A DNA stretch of 61,415 nucleotides, counting the filler, from Choristocarpus tenellus KU-1152 (taxonomy: Eukaryota; Protista; Phaeophyceae): the NCBI GenBank assembly GCA_964200185.2. It is 9 parts of 9 records of this genome, joined end to end, with 100 filler letters (N's around TTAATTAATTAA, not from the genome) between each part and the next. Parts side by side here need not be neighbours in the genome. Positions count along the whole stretch, not along the records: positions 32,996 to 50,771 come from CAXNAD020000628.1; 8 more parts are not named here. One strand, written 5' to 3'. Below are positions 1,560 through 50,771 of the stretch, in pieces (within the stretch, counting starts at the first letter, position 1; every line of letters begins with the position of its first letter). The notes under the pieces are model-generated. The model was not told where the DNA came from. It saw nothing but the letters and a program-made list of their open reading frames with translations, and searched no databases. The position numbers and the translations under genes are program-made.

Positions 1560-2970
1560 AGTTCAAAGTCCGTTGGGATGGTGGGGAAATGAAACCTCTG
1601 CAGTCAGTTTGTGAATTGGCTTTGAACTCAAAATAGCTGTGAATGTACTGATCTCTCTGGAAGGAGGTGGCATCCGGCGGAAAATTGTGTTGTTGTTGTA
1701 GTTGGTGCTGCTGCTCCTCTGATAAGCAGGCAACGACTCTCCTTGCTTTTTGGGAATCCCACAGGCGGGCGTCACTGGTGCTTCTTTGTTGTGCACAACT
1801 GGTTCCAACATTTTGATGCTGCTCTACGCACTTATAAAAATAGCCCCAGACAATACAAGCTCATCTTACCATAGATGACCACTCAAGCCCTGAGGGGTGG
1901 ACCGGCCACCATTCAGGCTAACACCAGGGAGAAGATCTGAGAGGGATACAAAGTTGAGGACATGAAACAATCATATCAGAGAGTGGGGTCAATGGCTGAG
2001 TGAAGGCGGTTGTCCTGCCTTGTACTGGTAAATGCCTGCCAAGTTTACTCTACTGTCAACATCCCAGCCTGTTCTTCCTCAAATTTCTCGTGGGTAATGA
2101 TAGCACAACTGTACTGAAAGTGGTCTGCCTTGAAGGGGTGGTTCACGGCTAGAACAAGGACGGCAATGGGGGCACCCTTTATCCCTTTCAATAGTGCTGC
2201 CTGCACCACTTGATACACTGGAACACGGAGGCATGGCAGGTGCGCGTCGGTATACTAGCCCCCTCTTCTTTGCAGGTGTCATACTCTACCGTGTTGATCC
2301 ACCTCTGTGTTATCTGACCTGATATACGCATGTGTTGTTCTGTGTGCATGCGTGCTGGTGAATCTTCTCATGGTTCAACCTTGTCCCACCCAAGCATGGT
2401 GTAAAATACATACATTGACCCTGCCCAAATATACACTCTCCAGTGTAAGAATGCTACATCCTCAATCAACGAGACCCTACCCTTTTCCTTCTGCTGGGGC
2501 AAAGTCCCAGCTGTTGGAATTGGTGCGCGGTTTTTGTTCTTTCCTTTTGTACAATCGACGGATTTTTCATTACCTTTCTTGGTTACGGTTGCTCTGGATA
2601 CCCCGGAAGAGCGCCCCTGCAGGGATTCCAACTCCTTCACCCTCTGGGCCAGTTCTCTTCTGTGGTCCTCCAGGGATTTTATCGTTGATTCGCAGCGCTG
2701 CTTGGCAGCCTCCTCCTGAGTCGTGATCGTCATCCCAGTGGGGTGTTTTTAGTTGAGGGTCAATTCTAGGGTCATTGAGGGCTTGGGGCAGAGGGGTTTA
2801 CTCAAATTGGGTGAGAATCGGGACGAAATTCAGGACTGAGGACTCCCAGGGACTTGCCTCATCGGCTTTCCTCAACGCTTTTTTCATCCCCTCCTGCACA
2901 GCTTGCAGTTTAGAATTGCAGTATGCTTCCCTCCTAATACTGCTCCGGAGCCTTACCCTTGTGAAATGAG
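1560..2970 (-). mobile_element. Degenerate TE-like ORF1/gag-type coding remnant, unclassified
   Basis: Broken minus-strand frames with a coiled-coil-like segment (EEAAKQRCESTIKSLEDHRRELAQRVKELESLQ) interrupted by stops and lacking convincing splice structure. Confidence 0.3.
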
Positions 2971-4015
2971 ATTAGCGTTGAGGTAGGGATGTACACATGG
3001 GAGGGGAATTGGGGCGAGGGGGGGTGTGAGGTGGGACAAATATTCAACCGACGCTCAATAGCACCTCAGCACTCCAGTGCTAGCGGATCCTTGTCAACAT
3101 TTGGGCACTATTGTATATGACCCAGGTGCCCTAGGTTGGGCAAGCATCTAAACTTTCAAACCCCAAACCGTGCCCAATCGATATATCACAGTATTCTAAG
3201 AAATCCAAATAGTTATGCTCTGTCCTGATAATGTGGGTTCCATACACTTTGGCTGTTGAGGCGTGAGATTCACACCACCAAAACAGTCCTACACCACTAT
3301 TCTCACCAACCAGTAGTACATTTCCTCCCCTAATTATTGACAAGCTCCATTTGAGATGTTACATGCTCAAGGCAAGGGAGGGGGCCCGCTCAATTCTCAC
3401 GCCAGTCCTATCACTCACTTGGTCATCCACACATGGGCACACAGTGTTGTGCTGGATCGACTCCTCCGTCTCACCCTGCCAAGCACCAGTTTCTCGATCG
3501 ACATTTTCTCGATTCTCTTCAAGAGGTTTGCACAAAATGTGCAGTGATTTACCATTGCAACACGAGATAAAAGGAGGAATAGAGATATGGCCAAGGTTCG
3601 TGTCGGGTTTGAGATTGAGAGTTGGCCCTCCTTATGGTGACTTTTGAGCAGTGGTGTCTGAGTCAATGTAGCCCAGAGAGGGGTGTCGCTGAGTCGTAAG
3701 GACCCTCGGAGCTTTCTTGGAGCTTTCTGGCGACACGTACCTTGGACCAATCAGTCCACGGGCGTGAAGTGCATTTTGACTGTTTTGGGGCTAACCTTGG
3801 TTATCCTTATCGGTGCCCTTTTGCAAGTGTCTTCATCTTCTTTACGCAAAGCTAAGGACCCCTCAAAACTCAAAATGGTCAAACCATGCACACCTACTCT
3901 CTCTTCTTTCTCACAGCGGTCGTGGGTGACAGCTTCACGGTCAGACTTACTGCCATGCTGTCTGCCTCGCAGTCAATGAGAAATATATTTGACTAGGGAT
4001 GGAGTCAAGGCTTGG

Positions 4016-4115
4016 NNNNNNNNNNNNNNNNNNNNNNNNNNNNNNNNNNNNNNNNNNNNTTAATTAATTAANNNNNNNNNNNNNNNNNNNNNNNNNNNNN
4101 NNNNNNNNNNNNNNN
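4016..4115. other. Artificial contig linker
   Basis: 44 N + TTAATTAATTAA (stops in all six frames) + 44 N. Confidence 0.99.
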
Positions 4116-4360
4116 GGGGGGTGGGAAGACCAACTACAGCATTAAAAACAAAATGTGCGAAATTTTTTTTTGAGAGCTCCTGTGTGTACCCCCCACTTGC
4201 CAATCTGGTATTTTGAGTAGCAGATGTGCCTGAAATACCCACCCTGCCTTCATCAACGCAATGGTCCTCTCAACAGAGTCACACCCTAGTACATACATAC
4301 ATACATACACATTACATATACTACAGGGCCTTACGAAGGATTGCGTACTCCCTCTCTAAC

Positions 4361-4958
4361 CTGTTCTGCCTCGAATGCGATGCACATCTTCCACAGCCCA
4401 GTCGATAGAGGATGGTGTCCAACTTTGTGGATTGCTCGTCTGTACACGCTATGTTTGAACAATGCGGGGTAGACGGACAGGGGGGGGGGGCAATCGCGAC
4501 GTGAGGGAGGGGGGCCGCTGGTTAGCTCTGCACAAATCACACATCCTCCATTTACTCTTGCAACCATGTATTGTCTTTGGTACTGACGGGATCCGAATTA
4601 TTCCATAAGTCCGTTTTACGGTAGGGACAACCAATGCCACTGAGGCATGTATAAAGCGTATTCGCTTGGAACACTGCAAGCAAACGCACGTATGTAGGAC
4701 AGCCGCCACTGTATGCTACGGGCTCACGCAGGTACAACGGCTATAAAAGGCCAAAGCACTGACAGGCCTGTCGAGTTGAAGAGTCAAACCAGAAACAATC
4801 AAACAAATGCAGCAAGGAGGGGAAAACCAAAACGAAGCACAATCTAATAGTGCAAGTGGCTTTTGTTGGGAAGTACTGTAGACAGAGCGCTGTGCTATCC
4901 TGCTCCTGCCAAGGCCACTGAAAATAGCTATGAAAGTATGGAGATTTATGCAGACCTC

Positions 4959-5001
<43 letters not shown>

Positions 5002-7231
5002 TGCTACAAAATTCCTACGATACTGTCATCATGCTAACGGTGTCTGGACACAGGCATCTCAAACCGCAGGAAGGCTCACAACTACCGCTGGGGGGAGGGG
5101 CACGGTGAGAGGAACGCCTGCCAAGGAGTATGCCAAGGTGTTTCTAAAGGGACTCTCAACATGTCATCAATCAGTTACTCCTTCATTGCCCCTGCACCCC
5201 AGCAAGGGCACACACGCCTCTCAGTCAGTCCATGCTACTGTGAGGTTGATAGTGAGCAGAACGAAGTGAGAACAGTTCAAATCTTTTACATTTTCCCCCC
5301 TCTCCGCCCGAGGCTCAGATAATTGAAGGCATATATTGATACATAGGCCGTGCACTGGAAAATACCTGAGTCCACTGTAGTAGTCACTGAGAGGAACCAG
5401 ATTATGATTGTCCTGAATCGTAATATCTTTCTGTGTGCTACTAATAACACATTGTATAATTGAGAGAGATCATGAACATTACTCCCAAACAGGTATCTGA
5501 TCAGGGGACAGATGGGAGACTCAGTGGAAGTGGCCTGCATCTGGGTAGTGCTTCAGTGACTGTTCTTAGCAGGGATTTAACGAAATTCTCTCTGTATTTG
5601 TCGTGCTCTGTTGTATTTGGCCTCCTACCAGTCCGTCCCCCACCTCCATGTTGCCTTGACAGTCACATCTTGGGCTGCAAACTTTCCAGTCCTTACTACA
5701 GGTTGAGCCTAGTCTTTTACATTATGTAGTATAATGCATTTCCGAAGGTTGGCATCTGAGGATGTTCATGTTCTACAGTAATATTTGTGCATACATATAT
5801 GACAAAAACTGTAGGTTGTACTCTGAGGTATGATTGGTCACGTCCGACATTAGAGGAGTTGTAGTACTTGTTATTGTGGAGACTAGTGGTCAATAGCAGA
5901 AAGCAATCAATCCCAAATATATACCATCAGAAAACAAAATCTCACCTGCGAAAAAAATCAGGAGCTCTCTCTGCCCCCTGACTATCCTTGCCTTTGCCCG
6001 CCCCTCCAATCAATGACAAGGAGTAAGGCTTCCCCCATCTGAGGTAGGCGAGGTATGCCTCCCAGATGTCTAGGCAATGGGGGGCCGCTGTCACAGCTTG
6101 CTCGAATATTGCCAAAGCCCTTGCATCCCCGGGATCATCTAAATGTTTTGTTCCTCCCGACCTCTTGGAGGCAGCCCCGATATCCCCTGAACCTCCACGC
6201 TGTTCTTTAGTCTCAGCTGGAGCTGGTTCGTCTGTCCCATTACAGCCTGTACTGTGGCTGCTTTGAGCGCCAGCGCTGATAAGCACTAGAGAAAGTTGGA
6301 CATACTGCAGTCGATTTCACATACATGGTTGAGATTTACTGTTCAGGTTGGAGTCCACATCAAGCTAAGATATTGACGGGTCGAGGACTTTGAAATGTGT
6401 GCTCACCACGCAAGGTTGGATGTGCCAAGGAGCACTACTTGGGACTATTAACATGCCAAGGAGTACGGAAGGATAGGAGGAGTTGGAGGATGAGTAACAT
6501 CGTACAGGGAAAATTATTCTCCAAATAATGGCAGCTGAAGTCTTCACATACGGGTTGCTGATGCTAAGGTCAGGGGGAACCTTTCTACAAATTGCCACGT
6601 TATTCAGCGGACGCCTTCGTCCAGTCGAAATGTACGTTGTTGGTGTGCAAATGATCCAAAATACATGGAGAGGAGTTGAATCTCATGGACAAACAGTTGG
6701 AAACAGCAAGCAAGACCTCGTGCTGTGTAGATAGGGGTCAAGGATACTGCATATGTAGCACCTTTACGTTGATTGCCCATGATAAGAACAAGCAACAGCA
6801 CTTGTGTTGAAAGGCGTTGGAGGTCAAGTAGACTCTTCTCTAATCCATCCCCGCTACCAACCTTTTGCCAGTATCCGAAGCACAGAGGGAATTGCCTCAA
6901 GAATCCATCAAACGCCTTTTCCAAGACATGCAAGTCCGAACCAGCTTCAACCTGCCAATTGTTTGCGCGGGGGTTAGCGGGTATTGCTTTGCACTGGCAA
7001 CGGCATGAACCTATCCTGAAAGATATAGAAATATCGCTATTTTAAGGCAAGGGTCACGTCCAGTGTTTGCAAAAGCTATGTGTTATGTCGAGGACATCCC
7101 CCTGAGGTCACCTGTGAGAGGAGGGCAACCCACGACTGAAAGTTCAGCGGATCGATTTCTACGGATTCCCACAGCAGACGCGTGGCATGATCGGAAGGAA
7201 CAGGAGCATCAGAATCTCCTATCGACTCCAT
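4361..7231 (-). CDS. PRP39: Pre-mRNA-processing factor 39-like HAT-repeat protein, 5' part. Exons 7231-7112, 6951-6862, 6304-5946, 4448-4361; continues past the contig end
   Basis: Spliced translation MESIGD..LWESVEIDPLNFQSWVALLSQ|VEAGSDLHVLEKAFDGFLRQFPLCFGYWQK|YVQL..IFEQAVTAAPHCLDIWEAYLAYL..FFRS|VYRRAIHKVGHHPLSTGLWKMCIAFEAEQ matches PRP39 motifs (FL.EFPLCYGYWKKY, FERAV..DLW..Y, VG...S..LW). All introns are GT-AG with matching phases (0, 0, 2). Confidence 0.9.
4959..4995. repeat. (CT)n microsatellite in a PRP39 intron
   Basis: Direct CT run. Confidence 0.95.
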
Positions 7232-32995: not shown

Positions 32996-33859
32996 GGGGG
33001 GGGGGGGGGGGGGGGGAGGCCTTTTAGGATGCATGAGATTTGCTTTGACTTTTTTCTAACCCGAACCCTGATGGTAAGTTTTGCAGTGAATACTCTACTT
33101 CTGTCCCAGCTCGTCTTCGAAATTCTAACAACTCAAAGTTCACTTCATTAGAGTTCATATTAAAAAAAACATTACATTTCCTAATAACTTTTCCTATGCC
33201 CAGAGAAAAAGAATAAAATAATATAATTTCAAGTAATGGAAAAGACACTTTTGAAATTAACACTAGAACAAAGGCATGCAAGTTCCTACTATATACAGTT
33301 AGAGCATCTGTACTAAATAAAATAATAAAGCAATAAAATAAAACAATGAATTGGAAGAAGCGGTGCCATGGCATACATAACCTTCATCTCTCTCAGCCAC
33401 CCATGTTATGTACCACCACACCATGTCATGTGTATTTAAGGTTCCTACAGATCATGCACCATCACCAGCCTTTCCTCCCCCCATTACAACCTCTTCATAA
33501 AATACTCACAATAATTTTAACTATTAAAATATCAATAGAGACGCAGGTGTAGAAACAACATATCAAATCTTTGACAAAATCAGACAGATTATGCACCTCC
33601 AGGTATCCAGTATCCAGTACACGCAAGGACAGATCTCATCAATATTAGAACACAGTATTAGTTCAGCAAAACTAAGAGCAAACCTGAGAATAGCCTTAGC
33701 TCTAAAGCAACTTCGATCGAAATCAAAACAGACACCTACAGTGCCATACACAAACCACACTAACTCCTTTTCCAAGCACCTTCTTGGTGGGCCCATCCAA
33801 TCTCTTGTCCCCCCCTACAAGTGACTCCTGCAGTCGGTGAACACCAAATCTCAAGCTAC

Positions 33860-36800
33860 CTATCTCCTGTGTGCCTTCCTCGGGCTGTTCAATGGCTCTA
33901 GGGTCAATATCTGGGTTGCTAAGCTTGGCAACAGACCAGGTGAGAGTGGCAAGGCTTCTGGCATTGAAATGGCCACCATCAATAAGCTCCTCTGCCACCT
34001 ACATATATAAGAGCGTGCATTACCATGGGTATCATGTATTACTCTGGGTGTTATCAACCTTCAATAACAAATAGCAATTACAGCCTGGTCTCACTTGACC
34101 TAGGGCTGAAATGAACCGTATCATAGTTGACACATACAGACCATTCTGTTAGTTATTGACAGCTGATAAGTCTAGTATTACACTGTTTCACTTTTTTATG
34201 GGTTAAAAGGTGAACATCAGAGATAGGGTCAATGTTGTTGCCAAAACAGAGGGAAGACATCTATCACAGTAGAGGCAGGGTAAGCTGGGGCAGCAAAGTC
34301 CCCCTGGTCCACAGGACGATTTTCAGTCAGTTCAATCATCATATTGAGGTGAACGCTTGCATCAGTTTCAGGTTGTGCAAAGCAAAGTTGTAGTACAGTG
34401 AAACAAGTGCCTAACAATATTACAGGTAAGGGGGCAGGATGGCACTGTTGTTCCAATACAGCATGGGTGCTTGGACTCCACTAAAAGGACCAATGACCTC
34501 ACCAAACAACTCCTATCAACACTGCTACTAAATAGAGGTCAGCTTAGAAGACAAGATGTTACTAATATCTAATACCTGTTATATAATAACTATTATCTAG
34601 TACCTCTTACCTAATACCTGTTATCTAACAGGAGTCTGCGAGTTTGGCAAATCTGATGTACCATAGGAAAATGAGTGAATTTGAGGCAAATGCATTGAAA
34701 CATCAAATGGACCAATAAAGAGCACTTTGCAAAATACCACACCACAATGTGCCTCCAACCTCTCACATCCCATTTGAGTTCATATTGCAGGGACTACTCA
34801 ACCCAACTATGAATAGTAATAATAATAATAATAAAGCAACAAGAATCTTGGTGACACAACCTCAACTTGTCCCCAAAAAGAAGCACCAAAAACTTCCACA
34901 TCATCACAAAATCTAGGTTTGCAAATCAGGAAAAGATTACAATGAAGTGGTATCCAACTCATCATGGTCAAATATCAATAATCATCAACAATCAAATTTG
35001 GGAACCAAAGCATCCAATTATTTTGTATTTATCACAAAATGCAATGGTATCCCTTATCTCAAATAAGGGCTGTAGCACTTTCCAAATGAAGTGAGTGGCC
35101 TATGATGAAAATATTCTGCATTTGGAATCTTTGGAAAAGTGAGCAGAATGGGTGTCTGGCCTCAAATGCTTGCATTTCCTGGGGCTGTGAGCATGCAGTA
35201 CATTACAATTCTTCTTGTAACTAGGGGAAGGAGGGGTAGTAGTAGTAATACTGCAGGAATCAAGCAATGTATCAACAGCAAGCACCGAACTGACTGGAAT
35301 TGTACTATTAAAAACAACCTACCACCATGTATAAAATAAATTAGTACGATAAACTTCCTACAAATAAATATTAAATATTCCCCAAAACTTGCCTGAAGCA
35401 AAACTCCCAGGTATTTATCCTCCAGCTGTGTGACCTCCTTGTTGTGAATAGCAACACTAGTGTCCTTCCTTCGATTCCTCTCTGCTTGGAGCTTGGCCAC
35501 TTTATTTATGGCAGTTACAACCGTGACATAGTTACACCTCGAGGGACGGTCTAGAACTGTTCTCATTGCCTGCGAGAAGAGAGGTGCATGTTGTTAACAA
35601 TGACACAACATTAGTGCACACTCTAATAGTACCCTCTGTGTAACAGGCGGTTGGGACTCAGCATCAAATGCAATATCTTCCACTAGTAGTGTAGACAGAG
35701 ATTGGAGGTTTCATTTGTCTACTGTAATTGATGGAGCTGCAGCCCTGCAGAGTGGATAGGGTTCTTGCAGCAGATATCAAGCCTAGTTACAATGTCTAGA
35801 GAGAGAGAGTATATGCTACAGTTTGTGCACTGAGTTGTTGATTGTTAAAACAGAGAATGGGATGTAAAGATTGAGAGTGAGATGTAAAATTTACATGTAC
35901 AGAGGAACAAGGCACTTACCAATTATGTTCAATTTATGTTTAATGTATATTAAATTCATGTTCACAAGTGGTAGGTGTCAGTGACACGACTGCTGTGATA
36001 TTTTATGGATATGGACATAATGATACACTTCAAAAATAAGACATGGTTGTCAATTTAATCTCCTTATTAGTCCTTTGGCAATCGCTAATGCACTTGTTTA
36101 GATCAAAGTTATGCCTGAAATGTCTTGCACTTGGAACCAAGTACACCCCAGACTCTCAAGCGCAGCGCTTTCTGAATTTGTTTTGGCTCAACCCAATGCA
36201 CAAACCTGCACCATGGCCACTGAAGTTATATATACAAAGTACGTAAGTTAATCTAATAGCTAACCTCTCACCTGTAATGGTGTCACTGCCGACTGTACAA
36301 CCTGCTGCACATGCCATGATTTCTGTTTGCTGCAGTCAAATGGGCCACCTGGTGGTCCCTTCTCTAATGGATCGGCAGTCACAGCTCCATTCCTCCCCAC
36401 GAACATATTAGACTGTTCTTCACATATTTCTACATCAGTCACTCCCAAGCTTTTCTCCAGTGCCACACCTCTCCCCCAATTCCTCTTGTCCTTCCCATCC
36501 AGTTTGTTCTCTTTCATCTCTGTCACCTCACGGATGACACTTGATGTCAGAGTGTCCTGTTTAGTATTTGCCCTTTGTCCAACCTTCTTTTTCAATTGCT
36601 CATTGAGCACAGACCTGTACCCTTGATTGTTTCCGATGGAGCTCTGTGGGAAGCACTTGTCGTTACCAATTGCTCCTTGATAGGCTGCCGCTGCCATAGC
36701 CACCTCCCAGAAGCTCTCTGGGTATGTCTCCATGATTTCCCTTGGAATGTTACTTGGGCCTGTCTGTGCAGTCGCTTCCTTATCCTCTCCTACACCTGGG

Positions 36801-37675
36801 AGTTTGAGCGACTCCTGTCCCTAAAAGAAAGTCCATGAAAGAGAGGAAAAGATGATCTGCATGGTGACGGAGTAGGTGTTGTATCAATGAAAAAATATGA
36901 ACGGGCATGACACAAAATGACCTCAAGAACTTGCCACCCTACTAGTCCAACAGCTCTATGAAGCACTGACTGATTGTTAAGATACGGGATCTGGAGCTGG
37001 CCTTGAAAAGATGGGTGTGTAGAACACCACATATGAGGTAGTGGTTCAATCTGTCTGCATGCAAATGAAAATAGTGAGTAGTGAAATTAATCATAGGAAT
37101 AGCATCACTATGGTAACTTGTGTGAAGGTTATCTTCATGAATACCAAAATCTCAAATGAGGTTGAACAGGACCCTATCCTTCAGGAATGTAACGTGATAA
37201 TATATCATGACAGATACTTGAAGTTTGTCCCATACTTGTAGGTAGACCTGACTTGAAAGAGAGAAGATACCAAAGCCAAGGTCAACTCCTGGGTGTATTT
37301 CTTGAATACACGTAGTTCATGTATGATAGTACTGGATTTTAATCTGGCTTCTTTCTTACTTGAATGAAGACATGTCGACCAAAGGCAACAAACAGGAAAC
37401 GAGGAGTTGTGATATCGACCATCTTGCAAGGTCCCTGGATACAAATCAAGAGGGGCAGTGGTCCGTACCTTGCTGACAGGATGTTCTCCACCTCGGCGGT
37501 TTTGCGCAAGCTGTGTTGCTGTGGGTTCCGCACGTTTCCTGTCACCTGCTTCCATGAACGCGAACGATGACGCCCCTCTCCATCTCAAACTGCCGACATT
37601 CCAATCGACTCCTCGGAAACTATGTGATGAAATGAGAAATGCGACTCCATTCCTCACTTCCCCGGTTTTCATCAT
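33860..37675 (-). CDS. RAP/OPR/FASTK-like helical-repeat RNA-binding protein, 5' part. Exons 37675-37469, 36820-36272, 35569-35393, 33998-~33860
   Basis: CNYVTVVTAINKVAKL (compare N.VNV.TALHRLAK) and HFNARSLATLTWSVAKL (compare F.PQ.LAN.AWA.AKL). Three phase-0 introns, the third with a CAG|GCAAGT donor. The 3' end of the last visible exon is uncertain. Confidence 0.75.
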
Positions 37676-38029
37676 CGAGTTTCTACTTGTGAATCCTTTA
37701 GCACAATAAAAGTATGCATGTTCAGCGTTGGAGAGGCAAGGAGTGATGAAAGGATTCGTCAAGTCACAACTACGTCATCCTTTGCTTCATGTGAGCCCAA
37801 TCACGAGATGAAATTGGTGCCGGATACTCATCTACAGTGGACCTACACACTATCCAGAATACTAGGCTATCTACGAAGATCTGCCCTCGACACCTTCCTC
37901 TTCTCTGTCCTTAACCCTGAGTTTGACTTTCTCCTCGACTATCCTCGACAGGCTAATGTCGTGCGGTTTGCCCCCCCCCTCCTCTCTCACTGCAACAGCG
38001 ATGGTTATTATAGAACATCGTCACGTTGC

Positions 38030-38080
38030 TAGAGAAGGAAGGAGGGAAGGAGGGAAGGAGGGAAGGGTGGAAGGATGAAG

Positions 38081-38119
<39 letters not shown>
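38030..38119. repeat. Purine-rich GGA/GA microsatellite upstream of the RAP-like gene
   Basis: GGAA/GGAG units followed by (GA)n. Confidence 0.9.
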
Positions 38120-38120
<1 letters not shown>

Positions 38121-38666
38121 ACTAGAATCGGCGAAAAGGGAATGAACACCTTCACATGCTGCAGAGACTTGCATACATGATGGACAAAGGAGATACAACC
38201 AGGCCGTAAGGACTAGGTAGGGAGCTCTCGGTCGGTTTCCATCACCGACCCAGCCTTGGGTTGTACACATTGCTCAAGATGCATGAGAGGAGTTGCTCCT
38301 GATTGAACTAGGGGTGTTGGAGGCAATGTGAAAGTATCAATACGTGTTCTTGTATAGAGCCGTGGGCGTCGGCTCTTGTCTTGAAGTACTTCAAATATCT
38401 ACAAGTATTCTACAATAAAATGTATGAGGGTTGTTGACATACACCCATCTTGTACATGGAGTTAATTAGTAGTACAAAAAACACTCTCACTAACTACCCA
38501 AATGTGTATTGTGTTCTAACAGGTTTTTAATTTCAAACTCGACTCTTTATTAGTAAACAGTTTAAGAGTAGGTTGACCGATTCGTGGGATTCTTCCCTTC
38601 CTTGTTTGTCATCCGGGAAAATATGTGTCAATATTGGAATTGGTTTTGTCGTTTTGTTGTCTGTTC

Positions 38667-38996
38667 CTCAATGTACACAACACACTACCTAACGTTCATG
38701 ATGCACTCTCAACATACACAACACACTGCCTAACGTTCATGATACACTCTCAACATACACAATACACTCCCTAAAGTTCATGATACACTCTCAACATACA
38801 CAACACACTACCTAACGTTCATGATACACTCTCAACATACAAAACACACTACCTAACGTTCATGATACACTCTCAACATACAAAACACACTACCTAACAT
38901 TCATGATACACTCTCAACATACACAACACACTACCTAACATTCATGATACACTCTCAACATACACAACACACTGCCTAATGTTCATGATACACTCT
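38667..38996. repeat. 41-bp minisatellite, ~8 copies
   Basis: Unit ACACAACACACTACCTAACGTTCATGATACACTCTCAACAT with few substitutions. Confidence 0.95.
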
Positions 38997-38999
38997 TAA

Positions 39000-39292
39000 G
39001 TTATAACCTCAACACCTTCGCAGTGGAAAGTTTTGGGGGCCTCAGCAAGCAAGCGGAACGTTTCCTGGATGAGCTGGCTATACACGCGGTAGGGGGGAGA
39101 GGAACTGGAAGCCATGCCAGGAAAGGGACGATAAAATCTTGCCTACATCAAATAGTATCGGTAACAACGCTGGTGGCACTGCCTAGACGTGTCATGCGTT
39201 TCAAGCTGGAGTCACCAGAGAGATGGGCAAGGAGGGGCTTGTTAGATTCTTGGGATGCTTCCCTAGCTCCTCACCCTGGGGTACAGGAATAG
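39000..39292 (+). mobile_element. 3' end of an RLE-type (CRE/NeSL-like) non-LTR retrotransposon ORF
   Basis: YNLNTFAVESFGGLSKQAERFLDELAIHAVGGRGTGSHARKGTIKSCLHQIVSVTTLVALPRRVMRFKL has the AVE.FG.L C-terminal RLE motif. Confidence 0.8.
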
Positions 39293-39870
39293 GTAGATTG
39301 GAGGCACAGGAAGGCAGTGGTAAAACATAGTGGTGAAATGACAAATACCTTAATGTTTTTCACATTTGTGACAAGTTTTAATTCCTTAGGGATTTTTCTG
39401 ACTTGTGAGAAGCTTTTTTTTTTCCTTGGTTTTCCCTCGACACATCTCAGAAATGTCAAAGGGCATAATAATATATTCAAGACTTCTAATACCATGTTTG
39501 TTGTGTTTGTTGGATTCTTATCATACTATGCAATTACTACTATACTAGTATATTATTTATTATGCCCTCTGACTTTTTCCAGATGTGCCAGGGAAAAACT
39601 AATGAAAACTATTCACATATCTGAAAAATCCCTATTGTATTTCCTTCTCTTTCGACTAATATGCTCCTCACCCTAGGGTGCAGGAATAGGTAGATTAGAG
39701 GCAAGGAAGGCAGTGGTACAACATAGATAGTAGTGAAATAACAAATAGATTAGTGTTTCTCACATTTGTGACATATTTTACTTGTTTAGGGTTTATACTG
39801 ACATGTGAATAGTTTTCATTGGTTTTCCCCCTGATACATCTGCAATATGTTAGAGGGCATAATAATATAA
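39266..39870 (+). repeat. Duplicated LINE 3'-tail-like repeat (two direct copies plus an inverted partial copy)
   Basis: GCTCCTCACCCT.GGGT.CAGGAATAGGTAGATT..ACATCT..AATGT..AGGGCATAATAAT at 39267 and 39663; inverted arm at 39549-39632; further copy at 50070-50215. Confidence 0.8.
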
Positions 39871-41299
39871 TATGTGGAAAGCATGTTTGTCTGTTGTTAT
39901 ACCATTATTATTGCCGTATGACATACACCTTTATACCGATGTAGGTTTCCTTGCTAGGAATCCCCGATTCCAGCGGAGGATCTTATGAGTAATTGAGGTG
40001 TGGAATCTTTCAAGAGATCAATCCCACAAGTAATGGACATCTCTTCAACCAGAGATGTCACACATCAAAGATTCTCTTTGTTGTCACGTCTTGACTTTTG
40101 AAATCCCCCTCTTGTAAGATTCTCATCACTAGTCACTCCACAGTTTTTCTACAAGTCCTTGCAGTCTTGCACTTGTCCAACCTTAACCTCATCCTCTTGG
40201 TTATGGTTTGTCTTTGTTCGTCTGGTCCGTCTAGCCTGGTGATTCTCTTCGCCACCCTTACCTGACTGAACCATGCCGCCATAGAATCACACGACTTGAA
40301 AAAATTTCTCGTTGTATTACATATTTGTATTATTTTATGTTTAATAGTTTTACTTCCTTCATACTTATTGATTTATGTACATACCTGTTTAGGACATATC
40401 ATTAAGAATAGTAATATGTAATATATAATATGTGACATTATGGTTAGAGCATTATAATTAAAAGAACAATCCAAGTACATAAGGGTAGTAGTAGTACTAA
40501 CAGTAGTGTGTTGGTATACTCCTACAATATAGTATGTAGTAGTTGATTGAGATACACTATATACTATAAATACTATTATGGAAGGAAGTAGCACTAAATG
40601 CTTTACATATCTTTATAATATTTCGAGTTAGACAACAAACAAAATTGGTTGGAATTGTTGGGCAAGTTTGATCTAATGCAGTTGATTTGTGATCCTAAAT
40701 CCTCCTGAAACCAAAGATATATGTCAGTTTTGGACCAAAATTGGAGAATATACATCAGCCCCACCAAGCATTCCAACCACTGTAAAATCTGCTACGGGTC
40801 GATTTATTCCGTGAAATATATATGAAACGAAAACTGACGCCCTAACATATTGATCAAGCAATTGCAGCACCTTCAGTTCACAATACAGTGTGTGATAGGG
40901 TGCACTGTCTCAAGAAGGGGATTAAATCTGTCTTGGGGGGTATTTTTGTTGTTTTCATGTTTTCATTATTTTTTTATCTGTTCATGACGTGAAACCTGTG
41001 CCATTGGAATACTGATATAAACAGGACTCATTTGATAAGTTTTTGCTGGCTCAAATCCTTTTGGTTGGCAGTGCAAGAACATTTGAAGATGAAAAATGCT
41101 TGAAGTACTCTAGATGCACTTTGAGTACTCCAAGCGTTGCTGGGTCATCTTTTGATATTCATTATTGGATTACAGGCTCACATTCATCAGCTTCGACACT
41201 GTCATTGTTCCCATCTTCCACCATGGGTTCCACCTTGTAATCCTGCAAAATCTCCTCATCTGCTCCCACCTTGACAGCATCCGTTGGTCTGCTAACTTT

Positions 41300-41940
41300 T
41301 TTTGTATATTTCAGCTTGTGTGGAATATTTGTCAGATTGAATACGTTCCTCCAGTATCTTGTCCTCTGTCTTGATCTATCTTGTCATCTCCCTCAGGGCA
41401 TGGGCTACCAGCTTGCCATAGTATAGTGGTTTCCATCCCTCAATCCGATCATAGTTAGGGTTACCCTATCACCCCAGCCTTATCTGATCTTCGACTTGGG
41501 TAATCATCTCTCCCCTTAGCATACCAAAAGCTGACATAGTGCTTCTATTCTGCCAAAACAACTCTATGGGCTGAAACACGGCCATATAAGGTGGTGTACA
41601 GATCATATTTCAGCCCTTCTTATCAACACCTCTGCCAGCTCAAGGAGATTGCTTGGGTAGTGACTCTTGTGATTTCATGTCATGGCATGCATTTCAGGCT
41701 AGAGACAACAGGGTCGGTGGGTAAGGCAGGGCTTGATTGCCTCATAGGATCCTTCTCTTGTTTCTAGACCGCCTTCATAGTGCCAGTTTAGGAGCAATTT
41801 CACCTTTATGTGTGTTGATAGGTTTATTGGTTGTGTTCAGAAAAAAAGTAGTACCTGTTTGTGCAGAGACTCCAGGTCGAGGTGAATGGAGTTGGTTTCT
41901 TGTTCGAAATATACAAGGATGGTTTGGTGTATCATTCAAA
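41300..41940 (-). mobile_element. Degenerate Tc1/IS630-like DDE transposase remnant
   Basis: ICTPPYMAVFQPIELFW (compare LPPY.PELNPIE..W) at ~41605-41550; possible decayed second-D motif LNDTPNH at ~41940-41918. Confidence 0.65.
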
Positions 41941-42189
41941 AGGCCTTCACTGTAAGCAATGCAAACTCTGTTGTTATCATGTTTGTTGTCTCCTTTGCCT
42001 TACATGTTGATTTTTACTCCCTCCACACAATATGCAAAATTTCAGTGGGCAAAACAACTATCTGGTACATACTGCATACTACATACTGCATACTACGTAC
42101 TACATACTACGCAAAATGCAACATTCATTATTTATTGCAGAAGGCGTTGGTTTCTTGTTTCCAAATATACTACAAAACTGCCATTAGTT

Positions 42190-42480
42190 TATAGCCCTTT
42201 ATTGCAAGATTTCTTATTCACTGAAGTGAGTGTAGCAGTTGAAGAATTCACATCTGATCCGATTGTCTCCAAGGATCTTGTTGCCATTGAGAAATCGTCC
42301 ACAAACAGCCAGATCAGACGACGAGGAGGAACACTATTATAGGGAGTGGGACAACACTTGAGTGGCTCCTGTGAGGTATATGCTTTCTGTTGATGATACG
42401 GGCATTGTCTCCAGGACTCAAGGAGGTTTGGCCAAGATAATGTCGGAGATAGTTAAAGGTGTGTGCAAATCATGTCCTGT
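42190..42480 (+). mobile_element. RTE-clade LINE reverse-transcriptase fragment
   Basis: SPLLQDFLFTEV..FTSDPIVSKDLV and YMLSVDDTGIVSRTQGGLAKIMSEIV correspond to PLLFNIFF..DLV and MLYADDAGIVSRS..GL..MM. Confidence 0.82.
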
Positions 42481-43769
42481 CATACAAAATGCTCTTGTGC
42501 AGACTGGATGTGAGAGTATTGACAATGTGCGCCATGCTAAAGCAGCAGCTAAGGTCGCATAAAACACCTCCATCACCATCATCACTGTCTGCTGACTGAT
42601 ATTTTCTCCCTTTGTTCTCATTGTGGATGTTTTTCCTGCATCTATCATTTCTTCTTTTTCTTTTTTTCTTTCTTCTCTTTCCTTTAGCGTTTCTTGGGTG
42701 GTAATGTTTTTTCCACCTGCAGGCCATCTTAGAATCTCCCTTTGTTCTCTTTCAACTGCTTTTATTTTATTTTATTTTATTTTATTTTACTGACCTTGAT
42801 GCCTTCACAACCAGTGCGTATTGCCTTCTTTGAACTTCCTTTTCAACCAATGGTGTAGGATTCCACAGAATAGTATGATGATGATTAACTAACCCATTCA
42901 TTGCAAGCGATACAGTGTTGTTGTGTCTGTTATATTTATTCTTTGTGTTTATGTTGCTTCTTCTACCCTATCACAATATCTGCAAAATGTCAAAATCATT
43001 TAATAAACATAAAACAATTGAATCTACACATCGGAAAAAGCATGTATTATATATGTGGCATTGGGTTTCAAAAATAGAACAGTATTGTAGTTCGGATATA
43101 TTCTTCTTGTTTTCAAAGCAATATACAATTAGTGAATAGTGATGCATACAAAGAGTCTACACTGTAAGCAATAAACTCTGTAATCATGGTTGTTGATGCT
43201 TCAACCATCTATGTTGCTCCTCTTCCACATCACAACATCTCCAAAATGTCAAGTGGGCTCTAAGTAGAGTACATATATGCACACCCCAGAGTAATACAGC
43301 AATGTATTTCAAATCTTAATTTTTCCACCATTTATACCTCTTCTATCCTTCATCCAACTTTGATATCTCAAGAGTCAAGGCGTTCACTGTCTTGTGGGAA
43401 AATTTCATATATATTTCATCCAATGGGATGTGAAGTGATCCTGCCAATGTAGCCCTATTCAGGGACTCGACCAGATTCAGTGCTACTCCAGCCTCAATAT
43501 ACGCCTGACAAAGCCTTGCTGCTGCCTCACATTCTTATCCTTTGACCTGGAGTCATCAACGAACTATGTCCATTGCACTAAACTCATACACCAACTTTGT
43601 TGCCCCAACCCTACCAGGTCTATGTCCCATCCGACTGCCCTGAGAATCCTCAGCACTCATCCTGGCATGCATCTCATTCAACTTCTTGTTCTCATACACC
43701 AACTTCGATTCATTCCCCAAATCCTATCTGGTCCACGCCCAAGCACCCTAAGAATCCTCACCACTCATC

Positions 43770-43826
43770 CTGGTTAGGATATCTGACTTACACTCAGGAG
43801 ACCAGGGTTCGTTTACCAGCGAGGGA
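43770..43826 (+). pseudogene. tRNA-derived fragment (Glu-like body, anticodon loop reads CTTACAC), 5' acceptor strand missing
   Basis: TGGTTAGGATA-TCTGA-CTTACAC-TCAGG-AGAC-CAGGG-TTCGTTT-ACCAG-CGAGGGA: D-loop GG, paired anticodon stem, GGTTCG B-box, mismatched T-stem. Confidence 0.6.
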
Positions 43827-46800
43827 CATAATTTATTTACACTGTCCTATCTTTTTAAAAATTGATCGTATGTAGACATCAAGTTCGAGAGACTTATCCT
43901 GTCAAACATCTCAGCATGCCCTATCCGAATGCCCTGAGAACCCTCAGCACTCATCCTGGCACGCATCTCATTCAACTTTTTTAAGATAAGCTTCTCCTTG
44001 CAAATCAGGGGAAGAGTCATTAAAAACTGTGCAAGCTTAGTGAATCACATGAGCAATTTTGGAATCTGTTGGCCAAATGATCGAGTACAGTGTTGGGTCT
44101 GGTTGCACAGCCACCTTGATATACCATGAGAAGCCGCGTTCCTCTCCTTGATCCTCCTCTTCCTGGCCTCCTGCAAGAGCTTTGTCTTCATTTCGGTGAG
44201 GTTTCTGCTATCTTCCAAATGACTTCTAGCTTCTTCACCTTTCTTCCAAACAACTCCAGTTCCTTAGGTGTTGTGGAATCTCTGTTGAAAGTCTATTGTG
44301 GTTAAACAAAGTTTCCATCAAAAGGCACTAGCTCCTTCCAGAGATTGCCAATCTTGATCTTCAAACGTTGCAAAATCTTCTTTTGGCAATCCTGATGCTT
44401 TACAGAGTTGTTTTTCGGGGGGATTCAGTGTGGACCTCAGCCTTGCGGTTCTTGGCAGGTAACATCTTTCATCTCTCATCTTCCTCACAAAGCATTGTAG
44501 TCACACTAGCCTTTTGTGTATTTCCTTCCGCCCTAGTCACACTGACCTTCATCTTGGGGAAGGCTTGCTTGAATTAGTCCTCCACCACTGATCTCGCTTC
44601 CCTCAATTCAGTCTCCACCTCCACTCGTTTCAACACGATGGTCTCAGCATCGGCAGTCACCTGCTTTGCTTCAATGACGGCAGATGTAATAGCAGCAGAA
44701 CCTTGCTCCGCCATCTGTCTACCTTCTCGAACCAGGTGTGTTCTGCCTGTGCTAGTGATGCCATGCTTGTCCCTGTAGGCTTCGTTTTGCCTTTTACCAG
44801 CGTGGGATCTCTTCCACACACTGCCTCCTAGTTAGTTACCTACACACCATCATGGGGTTGCCCATTTTTTTCGGTACAACTTACCACAGCAACCACGTGG
44901 ATGATTGGGGTATGGATTGTTGCTAAGAAGCGTTGGAAGTCCTTCTACTCAATGATCCCAAACCCTCTGTGACAGGTTTCCTAATTCATGAAGGGTAAGG
45001 GAGAAAAAAGAAGGAAATCAAAAGCCCTACTTACAAATCCCAAGAATAACATTTCGTTCTTCAAATAACCCTGTGCATGTATGTGATGGACTATCTCTGA
45101 AAAGCTCATCATCATCAACAGTTATTGTCTCATCCCAAGTGACCTGTTAAGAAATAAGTGCATCATGTTGTAGAGAGAAGTGTTGGGTCTGTAGACGGAC
45201 ACCAATATCAAAATTACAAAGTGTTACCATGAAAAAAAAAAAAAAAATGCCTCTCATTCTGATGCATGACTTGTCATTTGTGTGACTTGATTTTTTCTGG
45301 AGGGTTGGGTCAGGCGTCCCACCACCCCTTGCTCCGCCTCCTCCCACAAATCTAATGGCGAAGATAGTAAGGTACATGTGTACTCCCCAATGGACTTGCC
45401 ACATCATCCATCGAAAGCCAAATTTCCTGAATAATATAAAATAGTAGTACCAATAATTCTAAGTACATGTTCTTATACCTACCTGCTCTACACACAAATT
45501 TGTGAATGGTGGAGACTTTCATGAACACCCACCCTTTCTTTCTACCTGTAGTCCAGCCAATTAACATAGTAGTACTACGGTAGTGTATATACTTCAAAGT
45601 ACTAACTAGAACCTTAGAAGTTCACACTCAGTCAGTACTTTGAAGTACATACTTCAAATGCGTAAGACTTGCAAAAAACCGTATACTACACAGTACATAA
45701 TGCCTAACTATGCTTTGAGTATTACATAGATATCCATAGTCATTATTGCTTAGGGTCACAAGTCAGGTTAGGGTAGGGGTTTTATGGTTTCGGTCTGACC
45801 TCTCCTCATGAATATGCACACTACCCAATAAAGAGATTGTGAACCATTCTTTTGTACTCCCACCATCAGAAACTTAGTGCCCATCTTCCCTAACTGCTAA
45901 GTCATACACCTTCCATGTGCTTTCTTTGCATTTATGGGCAAACCTGTCATTGTATATTTGTATTCCCGCAGGTTTATATCACATTATCCACACTTCAACT
46001 TCAAATTACAAATACCTTGGCATACCATCCCAATCACATTACTTCTTTGGCAATTGAGAGATACCCCACCAAATCTGCCGATGGTTTGACTCACTCAGGT
46101 GCACTACTCCTTGAGCAAGTCATGGGAATAGACAAGTTTTCTGTCAATACCTTCATCTTGTCATCTGATAATAATGAAAACGCCCATCAGATTTGTATTC
46201 TTACCAAATTTTTCTATATTCAAGGGAAATTTTCCCATTATATGTAATGTATGCATATTGATACTCATAAGAATAATGCTTCATGATGGGTCCAAAGTGA
46301 TTGCCACATAGCAATAAACCATACTTACATAGTTTAAACTATTGCGTCAATAAGTTCAGGGCTATGAGCATTCTTCGATGCTACTGGTGGTTTGACACCA
46401 AAGCAGTGAGTGGTCTTTAGATCAAATTGTGTGCAGTGGTGAGAAAAGACAATAAACTTCGTAGGTTATTGGTCTTTCATGCTCACCCTGCAAATCATCC
46501 AAATTTTCGAATTTCTGTTACTTGGTAATATTCTCCAGTCACATGCGTCTGTGGTTGCTTTTCCACATATTATTAGGATGAGTAAAAATATATAGCATGG
46601 GACGGAATCAATGCAGGTGACAATGTATCCACCGAAGTATCTCAAGATTATGTGCTGTGCTTCAAAGTATGATACAGAAGTGGAAAATGAAGTATAATGC
46701 AGCAGTCCCCTCTTATCCAGTCCAGGCTCAAGTATTTCCTTTCAGAGAACATGACATCAGACTTTCACAAAAATAGACTTCCAATATAAATTATGGCACC

Positions 46801-48472
46801 CTACTTCACACAAGCACATTATTGAAAACACCAAATGAGTCCATGGTGGGGAAGAGGGGTGCAAGTGCTGTATGTGAATCCATGAGCCTAACAGTTATAT
46901 TGTAGGTTTCAGGATCCATTATAGTCAGATTCTGCAAAAAGGGATCCCTTCTGCAGTTCACACCTCATGTGGGAAACTCTGAGTTGTGAGACAGTACCTC
47001 TTCGTGGGTCGTTCACAATTCTAAACAAGATGGTCAGGGTCAAGTTCAAATATTTATCATACACACATTAGAGATAGTTCCACTGTCCATTGGACTGAAT
47101 CTTGGCCATGGTGACTTCATCCTAATTTAGATGTCTCCATCTGTAGTTGATGCAAAACCAGGCTTTTCTGCCAGGTTGTGCTAGCATACTGAATTGGGAA
47201 ATAGCGAAATACACCTCAGGTTTGCTACAGGAGTAAAGTTGCTGACATCATTCCAAACTGTCTATTTGCAAATCATGGGTCTCCAATTTGACAATCTGAG
47301 ACAGGTGAATGAAAAGATAAGCAGCAAACACTACCAGACTTTATTACCTTGGTTTAGTTGCCACCAATCTACAAACACCAAAGCATCAACAAGTACCATG
47401 AAAACCCATACTTCATCTGACCCCAACAATCCACTCATTGTGAGTCAGGTTTCTGGAAGTACTGTCTACAAGCTCCAGTGCTGCGCTTTTGCAAATACAA
47501 CTAGCCATGTCAAAGTTCCCAGAGCACCTGTAGCATCTATGGCTTATGCAGACATTTCTGGTATACCAGCATTATGGAATCTGTCATCAACTCTCCTTCA
47601 CAAAGGGAAACGACAAAGTGTAATCTAGTGTGAACAGGTTAGAAGGGGAAGAACAGGTGTTGACCAATTTCAAAGACCAGGTCCGACAAGAATACTGAAA
47701 TAGTTAACACTTCAAAATGCTTCAGAGCTATGTTTCAGTGATAGTCTCAGCACTGAAGAGTACATTGGCACCCGTAGGCTTCATGGGATGTATGTCTATA
47801 ATCTTTCAAAGAATCACACAATAACAGCAAAGTATGTACTGCACACTTGAATACATAATGAAAACATTGAACTTGGTCCAAAACACAGGACAGATAGAGT
47901 TCCACGCCCTGGATACACAGTCCTCTTACTTCACACCAGTACAGTGCAAAAGACAAAATGAATAAGAAGTTTCCCCATCCAGGCTACTGAATCCCCCATT
48001 GCACACAGATATGGACAGCGCTAAGATAGAAAATGGTCACACTCCTGACTGCACCATACTATTGTATATACTGCAAGCACTGCTCAGTGATCACCCCTCT
48101 CCAGATACCGTCATAACTCCAAATCACACCTTTGCAAATCATCCCTGTACATCCCTTCCATACAAACCGCAAAAAGTAGACTATCCCTCTAACACAATCA
48201 ATCAATCAATCAAGAATTCCTTCCCAGAAATTGACTCTGAATTTCTCAACACATGTAACATCGTCATCGAAAATAGCACTGAGTTGTAGTTAGAGTCATG
48301 GCATAACTATGCAAGAATCCAATAGTGGCATATGTGGAACCACTTCACCATGTGTCCACAGGATCATGCCATGACCATGACTCCAAGTTTGGCAGACAAC
48401 CTTGGCTCATCTACTTCAAAGATTGACTCATCCCCTCTCACACCAGAGAACTATTCATAAGAACTGGCATCT

Positions 48473-49942
48473 CTAGGTCCATTTGTACTTGCTGATCTTG
48501 GCCTTTTCCAGGACGAATTTTCCCACCTTAGGGAAGGGTAGGGGTAGTTCAAAACTGAGTGGGGTTTTAGGGTTATGCCATGTACCATGGCAGGTTCCTG
48601 CAGGGTATTAGCTGATTTCCCCACCTTGTATTTCTCCCGCTCCTCAAATGCCTCCACGTATCTCCAACCTAAGAGTCCTTGGCAGGACACGCAATATATG
48701 TCTGCCACAGTATGCATCCCTACTTTTCCAAATGGAGAGGCCAACGAGTTGAAAGATAATGTTCATGTCAAATAGCAGGGGTACAAGCAATAGGTGTGAA
48801 CAACAGCTAAGTTGAGACCATGAAAACTGTCAATAAGACACAGTTAAAACTGAAGCTACCAACCACTCACTGTTCATCATACATCAACTTCCTCGCAATT
48901 TGGCAAATTGACTGTTGCACATTGTAAGTCATTTCATAGTCGAGTAAATGCAACGTCTCACTCCGCATCGTCTTCCCGATAGACCAGGTATGGCCCTGAT
49001 GTGATTTTGTCCGCATACCCGCCATTCAAGTCAAATGGTGGTTCAAGAGTGACAAGACGTTCTGCCAGGTCTTCAAGGATTCGCACCTGTACGAAGAGTA
49101 CGCTTTGTGCAAGGGCCAGATGTCACGTTCACAGCACTATCGAACAGATATGCCCTGGGAAAAGAACCGATTACAATAGGGAAGGCGCTTCAGTTGGATG
49201 GTATGGATGAGTCACCCCCAAGGCACATGCGACTGATAAGCTAAAAAAACCCCATACACTTGACCCTTTCAAGTAGTGAATATCCACCAGGTTTATCCTA
49301 CGCCACCTTTGCTATGGAAGATCAGAATGCGATGAAATTTTAGTTGGAATTTTCTTCTGCATTGAATGGCAATAATCCTCTCCCATTCGGAACAAAGGGG
49401 GTCTTGGGATGACGAGAACTTTCCATTGATCAACTGGATGCTAAATGACTTACTGTCCGCTTTGGCCATGGAATTCCTTCGACACGATTTGACTTGCACT
49501 TGACAGGTGAGTGTCGCATTCTTCGCAGGAATACACCTGTTGGAATGATTTTCATTTAACGTGGCGGATTACATGGAATAGTCAGAGAGGAGAGGTAGGG
49601 GCGAGAGGTCACAGTTAGAGTAGTCACTTCAGTTCGCTGGCGACACATGATCACGACATTTTCGTTGTTAGTATCAGCGACACTTTAGGGAGATAATAAC
49701 ACTTCCTTCACACCATGAGCGATTGGGAAAAACAGGGATCACAGCAGCATTGCATGTGAAGGCGATCATTTTCGACCTCTTCCACCAAAATGTGAAGCCG
49801 AACTTGAAGTTATCAAGATCATGTCGACTCCGATACTAGGGCATCTAAAAACCACAGGTAACGGACTCTAGAACATCGTGGATTAACCTAGCTAGTCACT
49901 TTCCTGGTGATCCTCCAGGTACTGTTTCGATATCCGTCCCAT
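48473..49942 (-). CDS. YPEL: Yippee-like zinc-binding protein, complete, 112 aa. Exons 49942-49904, 49536-49454, 49154-49087, 48719-48625, 48526-48473
   Basis: [13 protein letters not shown]|[28 protein letters not shown]|[23 protein letters not shown]|[31 protein letters not shown]|[17 protein letters not shown]. Both CxxC pairs are intact; 339-nt CDS. Intron 1 needs a GA donor. Confidence 0.92.
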
Positions 49943-50069
49943 CTCCACTTTCTGTTGTGTATATTTTTGGGGATTTATCACTCAATGGCGAGCACCGCGC
50001 GTTGTGTTGACGGTATAACCCTATAAAAACTCAAATCTGTTTTACATACAGTTCGAAATAATATAGAGA

Positions 50070-50215
50070 GGCCCAGGGGCACAGGAATAGGTAGATGGGA
50101 AGATAAGGACGACAGTAGTACAGTATTTGATAGTGAANNNNNNNNNNGTATGTATATAGTTTTCATTGTTTTCCCCCTGACACATCTGCAAAATGTCAGA
50201 GGGCATAATAATAAA
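50070..50215 (+). repeat. Copy of the LINE 3'-tail-like repeat just upstream of the Yippee gene
   Basis: CAGGAATAGGTAGAT..TTTTCCCCCTGACACATCTGCAAAATGTCAGAGGGCATAATAAT, as at 39663-39870. Confidence 0.75.
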
Positions 50216-50771
50216 ATATAGAGAGGTTAATATATTCGTATCGTATTATTAGCACAGGTTCACCCATCGTCTCCACATCACGCCGAAGGCTGCATCACCC
50301 AAGACAAACGGATGGAGATTGCACATCACTTCTCGATGAGCAGAATCTTCCAAGTCAAGACTTCTATAGAGTGAACTGCTGAACTCTCATATTACTTCAT
50401 GATGAGAGGAGATTGATCAAAATCTGTACGGCATATTTTCATTCCATAACTATACCATATAGTAGAGTAAAGAGCATCAAAGCTCTTTCGTACATCAGGG
50501 TCCTAGTAAATCGAAGGCAGAGGGTGAGAAATGATGGTGTTTACGAGAGGCTGGCGACTATGCAGGGAAAATGGTGAATGCGGTTGAAGGCAGAGACAGG
50601 AGGGACAAGTCAGGTGGTCCTCAAAACGTTCCTTTCACAGCAGGTGTATGCCGACCTTACTAATGCCTTCCTAGCATCAATATGCTTGTGCGAGGCTGCT
50701 TACTCCAATAAGTTTCAGTGTTAAGAATATGCTTTTTATTCATGTGTAAAATATGATTCTGTGGGAGAAAC

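Follow-up and report, generated by a model that had tools for sequence, protein, structure and literature searches.

The first intron of a Yippee gene in the alga Choristocarpus tenellus KU-1152 starts with GA, ends with a normal AG and is very probably a genuine U2-type GA-AG intron, produced by a T-to-A change at its position +2 and spliced by the major spliceosome. The gene lies in the window, that is, the whole stretch of 61,415 nucleotides that was analysed and whose positions are used throughout. Its features, with what each is based on, are the following.

48473-49942, minus strand: Yippee gene with five exons, from the ATG (49942) to the stop (48473), on the piece taken from CAXNAD020000628.1 (about 17.8 kb, 32996-50771).
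49943-50101, minus strand: 5′ untranslated or upstream transcribed stretch; X2 contig over 49903-50101, depth 186.
49904-49942, minus strand: exon 1, 39 nt, 13 residues, ATG at 49942-49940; orthologous exon in Discosporangium and junction in an RNA-like X2 contig.
49537-49903, minus strand: intron 1, 367 nt, GA...AG, phase 0, running GAAAGTGACTAG...TTCCAACAG; X2 joint, the only one of five placements that ends in AG.
49902-49903, minus strand: noncanonical donor dinucleotide GA (G at 49903, A at 49902); contigs of X1 and X3 and unspliced contig of X2.
49898-49899, minus strand: neighbouring GT (GAAA/GTGACT), phase 1 and frameshifting, with no use seen; phase, U1 match and X2 joints.
49537-49538, minus strand: acceptor AG of intron 1, followed by G at 49536; sequence and placement of the junction.
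49454-49536, minus strand: exon 2, 83 nt, with the first CxxC; 70% identical to 4969-5049 of the Discosporangium contig L001.
49155-49453, minus strand: intron 2, GT-AG, 299 nt, GTAAGT..CCCAG; X2 joint, depth 4979.
49087-49154, minus strand: exon 3; match to the L001 exon.
48720-49086, minus strand: intron 3, GT-AG, 367 nt, GTGCGA..AGTAG; X2 joint, depth 1841.
48625-48719, minus strand: exon 4, 95 nt, with the second CxxC, absent from a minor RNA form; Pfam PF03226 match on its ORF.
48527-48624, minus strand: intron 4, GT-AG, 98 nt, GTGGGG..CTAAG; X2 joint, depth 2530.
48473-48526, minus strand: coding part of exon 5, stop TAG at 48475-48473; 88% identical to L001 7122-7172.
48000-48472, minus strand: 3′ untranslated region, the transcript extending below 48000; X2 contig (1683 nt, depth 1059) over 48000-48528 and beyond.

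The coding sequence comprises 339 nt, that is, 112 codons and a stop, and exons 2-5 are intact. The donors of introns 1 to 4 read cag/GAAAGT, aca/GTAAGT, cag/GTGCGA and aag/GTGGGG, and each of the four acceptors is an AG followed by G. A preliminary description of the locus, made from the sequence alone, had arrived at the same structure, and its reading is borne out in each of these respects: exon 1 encodes 13 residues and ends at CAG/GAAAGT, which agrees with the consensus except for the A at +2; exon 2 starts in phase 0 at 49536, where ...ttccaacag/GTGTAT is found with an in-frame TGA (49554-49552) just upstream; and the other four exons are intact. Its statements on the alternatives to the GA donor also stand, as using the GT at 49899-49898 would produce a 43-nt exon 1 that ends in phase 1 and loses the frame, while reading through intron 1 leads to a TAG after three further codons.

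Other peculiarities of intron 1 were considered and set aside. Although introns 1 and 3 have the same length (367 nt), their alignment revealed no relationship, and the agreement is a coincidence. A 9-nt repeat, AAGTGACTA, present at the donor and again within intron 1, does not exceed the level expected by chance. No inverted repeats joining both ends of the intron were found, the pairs detected being internal only; consequently, it does not belong to the nonconventional introns with paired ends that are found in euglenids or as introners in Amoebophrya.

The identity of the protein was established by comparing the exons one by one. The exon 4 ORF matches Pfam PF03226 (Yippee-Mis18) with an E value of 0.0034, which, for this fragment query, is below the whole-protein cut-off, and phmmer with the same ORF returned 845 Yippee protein matches (a first word search with it had returned one irrelevant fragment). 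The five exon peptides all align collinearly along full-length PF03226 proteins. Considered exon by exon, the product thus shows the conserved motifs of the Yippee/YPEL family together with its two CxxC pairs, which are separated by about 50 residues. Like other members, it has an MGR N-terminus, CEEC (exon 2) and CVSC (exon 4), the motifs AYLF, TG.H.V.DI.C and KYK.GKF.LE, and a length of 112 residues. Nothing in it is unusual for the family, and it is closest to the Discosporangium copy, with which it has in common a distinctive C-terminus ending in (Y/F).WT. Separately, X1 and X3 contain additional contigs whose match is confined to 48705-48737, a core of 33 nt within exon 4, with divergent sequence on either side, which suggests that the genome also carries one or more Yippee paralogues.

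The GA donor and its use were examined in contigs assembled from three public runs of one study on the same organism (X1, X2 and X3), compared with the window over 48000-50137. Two of these runs are DNA-like. X1 has a flat depth of 21.6 and no joints, and a 7340-nt contig crosses the donor with no differing letters; X3 has a flat depth of about 7, also lacks joints and contains an 875-nt contig that crosses the donor, again with no differing letters. X2 is RNA-like, with depths of 2000-6000 in exon bins vs. 67-365 in intron bins; its RNA nature is inferred from this pattern and from its joints, as no run is recorded as RNA. An A is present at 49902 in the contigs of all three runs, at depths of 7 to 365 (X1, X3 and the unspliced X2 contig). 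As the contigs show no differences from the assembly, they possibly derive from the same strain or even the same reads and are not independent of it; thus, the GA...AG intron is found in the genome according to contigs that may come from the assembly’s own strain. In any case, checking position 49902 in genomic data, as the preliminary description had proposed, gave A in the contigs of both DNA-like runs.

Joints were present in X2 for all four introns. At introns 2, 3 and 4 the skipped stretch has the plus-strand ends CT..AC, that is, GT..AG on the minus strand. For intron 1, a 113-nt contig with a depth of 4418 (the intron-2 joint has 4979) consists of 30 nt of exon 1 and 83 nt of exon 2, with zero nt between them. 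The joint (49535->49903) omits 367 nt, and four letters (CAGG) are common to both of its sides, so that it can be placed in five ways: AA..GG, GA..AG, GG..CA, AG..AC and CA..AA. None of the five corresponds to a GT-AG, GC-AG or AT-AC intron, and an AG end is obtained only with GA..AG. Consequently, the intron is exactly removed and there is no canonical way of placing its boundaries. The junction predicted beforehand, 49904->49536, was therefore found among the X2 contigs, whereas the one from 49900 to 49536 was not. The unspliced form of intron 1 is represented in X2 by a 416-nt contig that carries the GA and has a depth of 365; the spliced form is about 12 times deeper, although abundance is only poorly reflected by contig depth.

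These data leave little room for an artefactual origin of the GA intron, which could have consisted of an assembly or base-call error producing the A, of a template switch across the CAGG repeat or of a processed DNA copy as the source of the joined form. Such an origin might be suspected because direct repeats like the CAGG at both sides of the junction favour template switching by reverse transcriptase, and because the assembly, a draft built from short reads, includes an N gap and a contig end made of poly-G. However, the A is found in contigs from the three runs at depths of 7 to 365, the joined form is some 12-fold deeper than the unspliced one, when template-switch products are normally rare, and the junction falls at a conserved intron position and phase, restoring a conserved frame. 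Additionally, CAG/G at both ends is nothing else than the ordinary splice-site consensus. A processed DNA copy is ruled out by the absence of the joined form from the DNA-like X1 and X3, and a base-call error at 49902 by the presence of the A in the contigs of X1, X3 and unspliced X2. Neither is there a hidden micro-exon in intron 1, as 30 and 83 nt account for the whole 113-nt contig and nothing is inserted between them. These two alternatives, both raised in the preliminary description, are consequently discarded, and we consider the probability of an artefact of any kind to be minimal. A nonproductive gene is likewise contradicted by the abundant in-frame junction between exons 1 and 2.

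The preliminary description had also suggested that the GA donor might compete with the GT located 4 nt downstream as a regulatory switch. According to this idea, use of the GT would lead to a frameshifted mRNA that would be degraded, tuning the output of Yippee. The GT at 49899 does exist and is out of frame, contigs readily lose small bubbles between sites 4 nt apart, and a frameshifted product may undergo degradation; rare isoforms can therefore hide in this type of data. Nevertheless, no joint from 49899/49900 to 49536 was observed among the X2 contigs, even though forms with depths of 67-1118 were recovered, and the GT is a weak donor, matching U1 at 5/9 positions with a predicted duplex of -2.4 kcal/mol. 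In fact, this GT merely corresponds to positions +5/+6 of the consensus of the GA site itself. The proposed switch is, thus, unsupported by the available contigs, and we regard a regulated pair of donors as improbable.

A more serious competitor to the GA-AG intron is the existence of a hidden heterozygous allele, the only form in which the previously proposed “fresh splice mutation” survives. In that case, all the spliced mRNA would come from an allele with GT, and the recently mutated GA allele, the only one kept by the assemblers, would remain unspliced. Contigs show presence and not absence, minor variants being lost from them, and heterozygous bubbles in particular get popped. Moreover, the unspliced contig of intron 1 is the deepest, at 365 (intron 2, 67; intron 3, 164), and the joint between exons 2 and 3 exceeds that between exons 1 and 2 (4979 - 4418) by an amount comparable to the depth of the retained intron. 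The difference among unspliced contigs fits an unspliced allele, but it fits a moderately slower intron as well. Against a second allele, the A was kept in the assembly and in the X1, X3 and X2 contigs, with no alternative contig among the matches, and many brown-algal culture strains are haploid. Furthermore, the mutation would by chance have struck the one of eight donors that otherwise has 8/9 matches to U1 with an A at +3, which is precisely the setting in which GA donors are known to be functional. Taken together, these observations make a hidden allele unlikely, and the removal of a GA-AG intron continues to be the preferred interpretation.

A further junction observed in X2, 49087->48526, skips exon 4 and has a depth of 1118, compared with 1841 for the joint between exons 3 and 4. 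Loss of this 95-nt exon shifts the frame, leading to 29 residues followed by a stop and to the loss of the second CxxC pair; the exon 4-skipped form may be a sizeable nonfunctional isoform.

Of the relatives found, the closest is a gene at 4240-7178 of contig L001 (CAXNAE020001888.1) from Discosporangium mesarthrocarpum, a brown alga of an early-branching lineage; its protein (P0005) is the best multi-exon match among the phmmer matches. When each exon was compared with this contig by tblastn, all five were found in collinear order at 4240-4278, 4969-5049, 6058-6123, 6436-6528 and 7122-7172, with identities of 70-88%; exon 1 (4240-4278) reads MGRIAKQLLEDPQ. The positions and phases of the four introns are common to both genes. 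The four introns of the orthologue all have GT donors, including intron 1, which is canonical (CCCCAG/GTGAGT...TTGCCCAG/GTATAC). No DNA similarity was detected between the 17.8-kb piece and L001. The public Discosporangium model (91 residues) begins at L001 6001, inside intron 2, and lacks exons 1 and 2 even though both of their introns are GT-AG, which looks like an annotation truncation.

Inspection of the donor in a relative had also been suggested beforehand, and the CAG/GTGAGT of Discosporangium provides the comparison. As there is a GT at the same intron position in this species, the GA of Choristocarpus would be the derived state, resulting from a T-to-A change at +2 of intron 1, with the direction of the change inferred from the orthologue. 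The RNA joint at 49904/49536, the A at 49902 and the GT donor of Discosporangium together support the earlier proposal of real GA-AG splicing in an alga that is not a dinoflagellate.

The next-best full-length relatives also belong to ochrophytes, namely Heterosigma, Phaeothamnion and Pinguiococcus. The Phaeothamnion orthologue (L002 1501-2062) contains a single intron, at the position of intron 3, and in Heterosigma an intronless copy is present on each of two contigs, with identical sequence (L003 and L004 1501-1842). Within the orthologues sampled, introns 1, 2 and 4 thus appear to be specific to the brown-algal side. A burst of intron gain has been reported just before the split of brown algae and Schizocladia, and a Phaeothamnion gene with intron 3 only and an intronless Heterosigma gene fit such a burst. 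A dinoflagellate origin of the gene, prompted by the GA donor, the G after each acceptor, the short exons and a GC content of about 41%, was rejected, as the nearest proteins are from ochrophytes and all four introns are common to Discosporangium; the best matches instead suggest a position within or beside the brown algae. Similarly, splicing in the GA/GC style of dinoflagellates is not observed here: the relatives are ochrophytes and 7/8 of the donors compared are GT.

Some characteristics of the surrounding DNA should also be mentioned. A short element of very high copy number (50072-50214, plus strand; flanks 50060-50071 and 50215-50226) is located some 130 nt upstream of the Yippee ATG, and its summed contig depth in X1 is 19,000-216,000, vs. 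21.6 for the flank. Its other copies all start exactly at 50072, a perfect 12-nt direct repeat (AATATAGAGAGG) is present on both flanks and one end is A-rich (ATAATAATAA). It resembles a SINE- or MITE-like element that duplicated its target site on insertion. The element contains an assembly gap (50138-50147) and is partly transcribed with the 5′ untranslated region of Yippee. The 17.8-kb piece opens with 21 consecutive G (32996-33016), probably a poly-G sequencing artefact at the contig end, and includes a tandem repeat (38667-38996) with eight copies of a 41-nt unit and 94% matches. Two minus-strand ORFs (33726-33998 and 35165-35593) contain motifs (...FNARSLATLTWSVAKL...) similar to the helical repeats found in organellar RNA-binding proteins of RAP/FASTK-like type, and Pfam returned no significant match for either of them. 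In Discosporangium, a RAP-domain gene (L001 9552-11572) adjoins the Yippee gene, in the opposite relative strand. Pfam gave nothing usable for the other ORFs of the piece that were scanned, and a second gene could not be established. Scans of the piece for Rfam families and tRNAs produced no matches, and its transposon-like ORF had no informative match in the ESM Atlas.

The strength of the GA donor may explain why it is still used. It matches CAG/GUAAGU at 8/9 positions, the sole mismatch being at +2, and its predicted duplex with U1 has an energy of -8.2 kcal/mol (calculated with the textbook U1 5′ end), which is within the range of the GT donors of the same gene (-5.6 to -9.3 kcal/mol). When the eight donors of both orthologues are compared, 8/9 is otherwise reached only by the intron-1 donor of Discosporangium, and outside +2 the best fit is that of the GA donor. 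The GA donor thus shows the complementarity to the textbook U1 expected of U2-type introns, and the U12-type motif RTATCCTT is absent from it. It has been reported that brown algae have lost the minor spliceosome and that their introns are almost all GT-AG (bioRxiv 10.1101/2024.02.19.579948); if this is so, intron 1 must be processed by the major spliceosome.

We therefore propose that the T-to-A change at +2 arose in intron 1 of a conserved five-exon Yippee/YPEL gene and that splicing would have persisted because the remaining positions of the 5′ splice site all fit the consensus. In this model, a single A-A mismatch would not prevent the U1 snRNA from docking in its proper register, and U5/U6 would then set the cleavage after the last G of exon 1. 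A normal AG would close the intron, and the in-frame product, joined ahead of VYSC, would encode the full 112-residue Yippee protein. In general, an A at +2 usually allows the first catalytic step and hampers the second one. Splicing of intron 1 may be somewhat less efficient or slower, with which the unspliced contig depths, as a rough guide, agree.

U2-type GA-AG introns are already known in plants, animals and fungi, where they represent approximately 0.01-0.03% of introns (about 0.01% in plants; PMC7072748, PMC10668435), and Yippee intron 1 is a single further example of this rare class. For instance, intron 12 of SYMRK in Trema orientalis owes its GA-AG ends to one base change and retains full function (PMC10668435), and a functional GA donor, also due to a single base change, is attributed to human FGFR1-3 in a work cited by PMC7072748. 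With these rare introns, Yippee intron 1 has in common the location in a lone gene of a GT-AG genome, a base change at +2, a donor that otherwise fits U1, and a gene that is functional and in frame. There are also differences, as the ancestral donor was GC in Trema SYMRK and, judging from Discosporangium, GT in Choristocarpus, while in human FGFR a canonical GT lies 6 nt upstream of the GA, instead of at +5/+6 as in Yippee. No report of GA-AG introns in brown algae or other ochrophytes was found in a non-exhaustive literature search.

[quoted passage not shown] By contrast, non-GT donors are found genome-wide in those organisms, with GC/GA-AG reaching 25-74% in Symbiodiniaceae and GA-AG 3.2% of the splice sites with RNA-Seq support in one of the two species E. 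affinis and O. dioica (PMC7072748), whereas three of the four introns of the Choristocarpus gene and the four of its orthologue have GT.

It is conceivable, though we give it only a small chance, that the GA donor is old, fixed and possibly regulated, either as part of a lineage-wide tolerance of A at +2 in donors whose U1 pairing is otherwise perfect or as a switch between GA and the GT at +5 that is coupled to mRNA decay. If either were true, a brown-alga-like lineage with no minor spliceosome would offer a new natural system in which to study how a “dead-end” GA donor is overcome by the major spliceosome, and, if tolerance extended to many donors, gene predictors would miss such GA sites. 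On the scale of the present finding, one intron of a known rare class, gene predictors that admit only GT and GC donors will truncate or miss the Yippee gene of Choristocarpus, and a brown-alga-like organism proves able to excise a GA-AG intron with its major spliceosome when the donor otherwise matches U1 perfectly.
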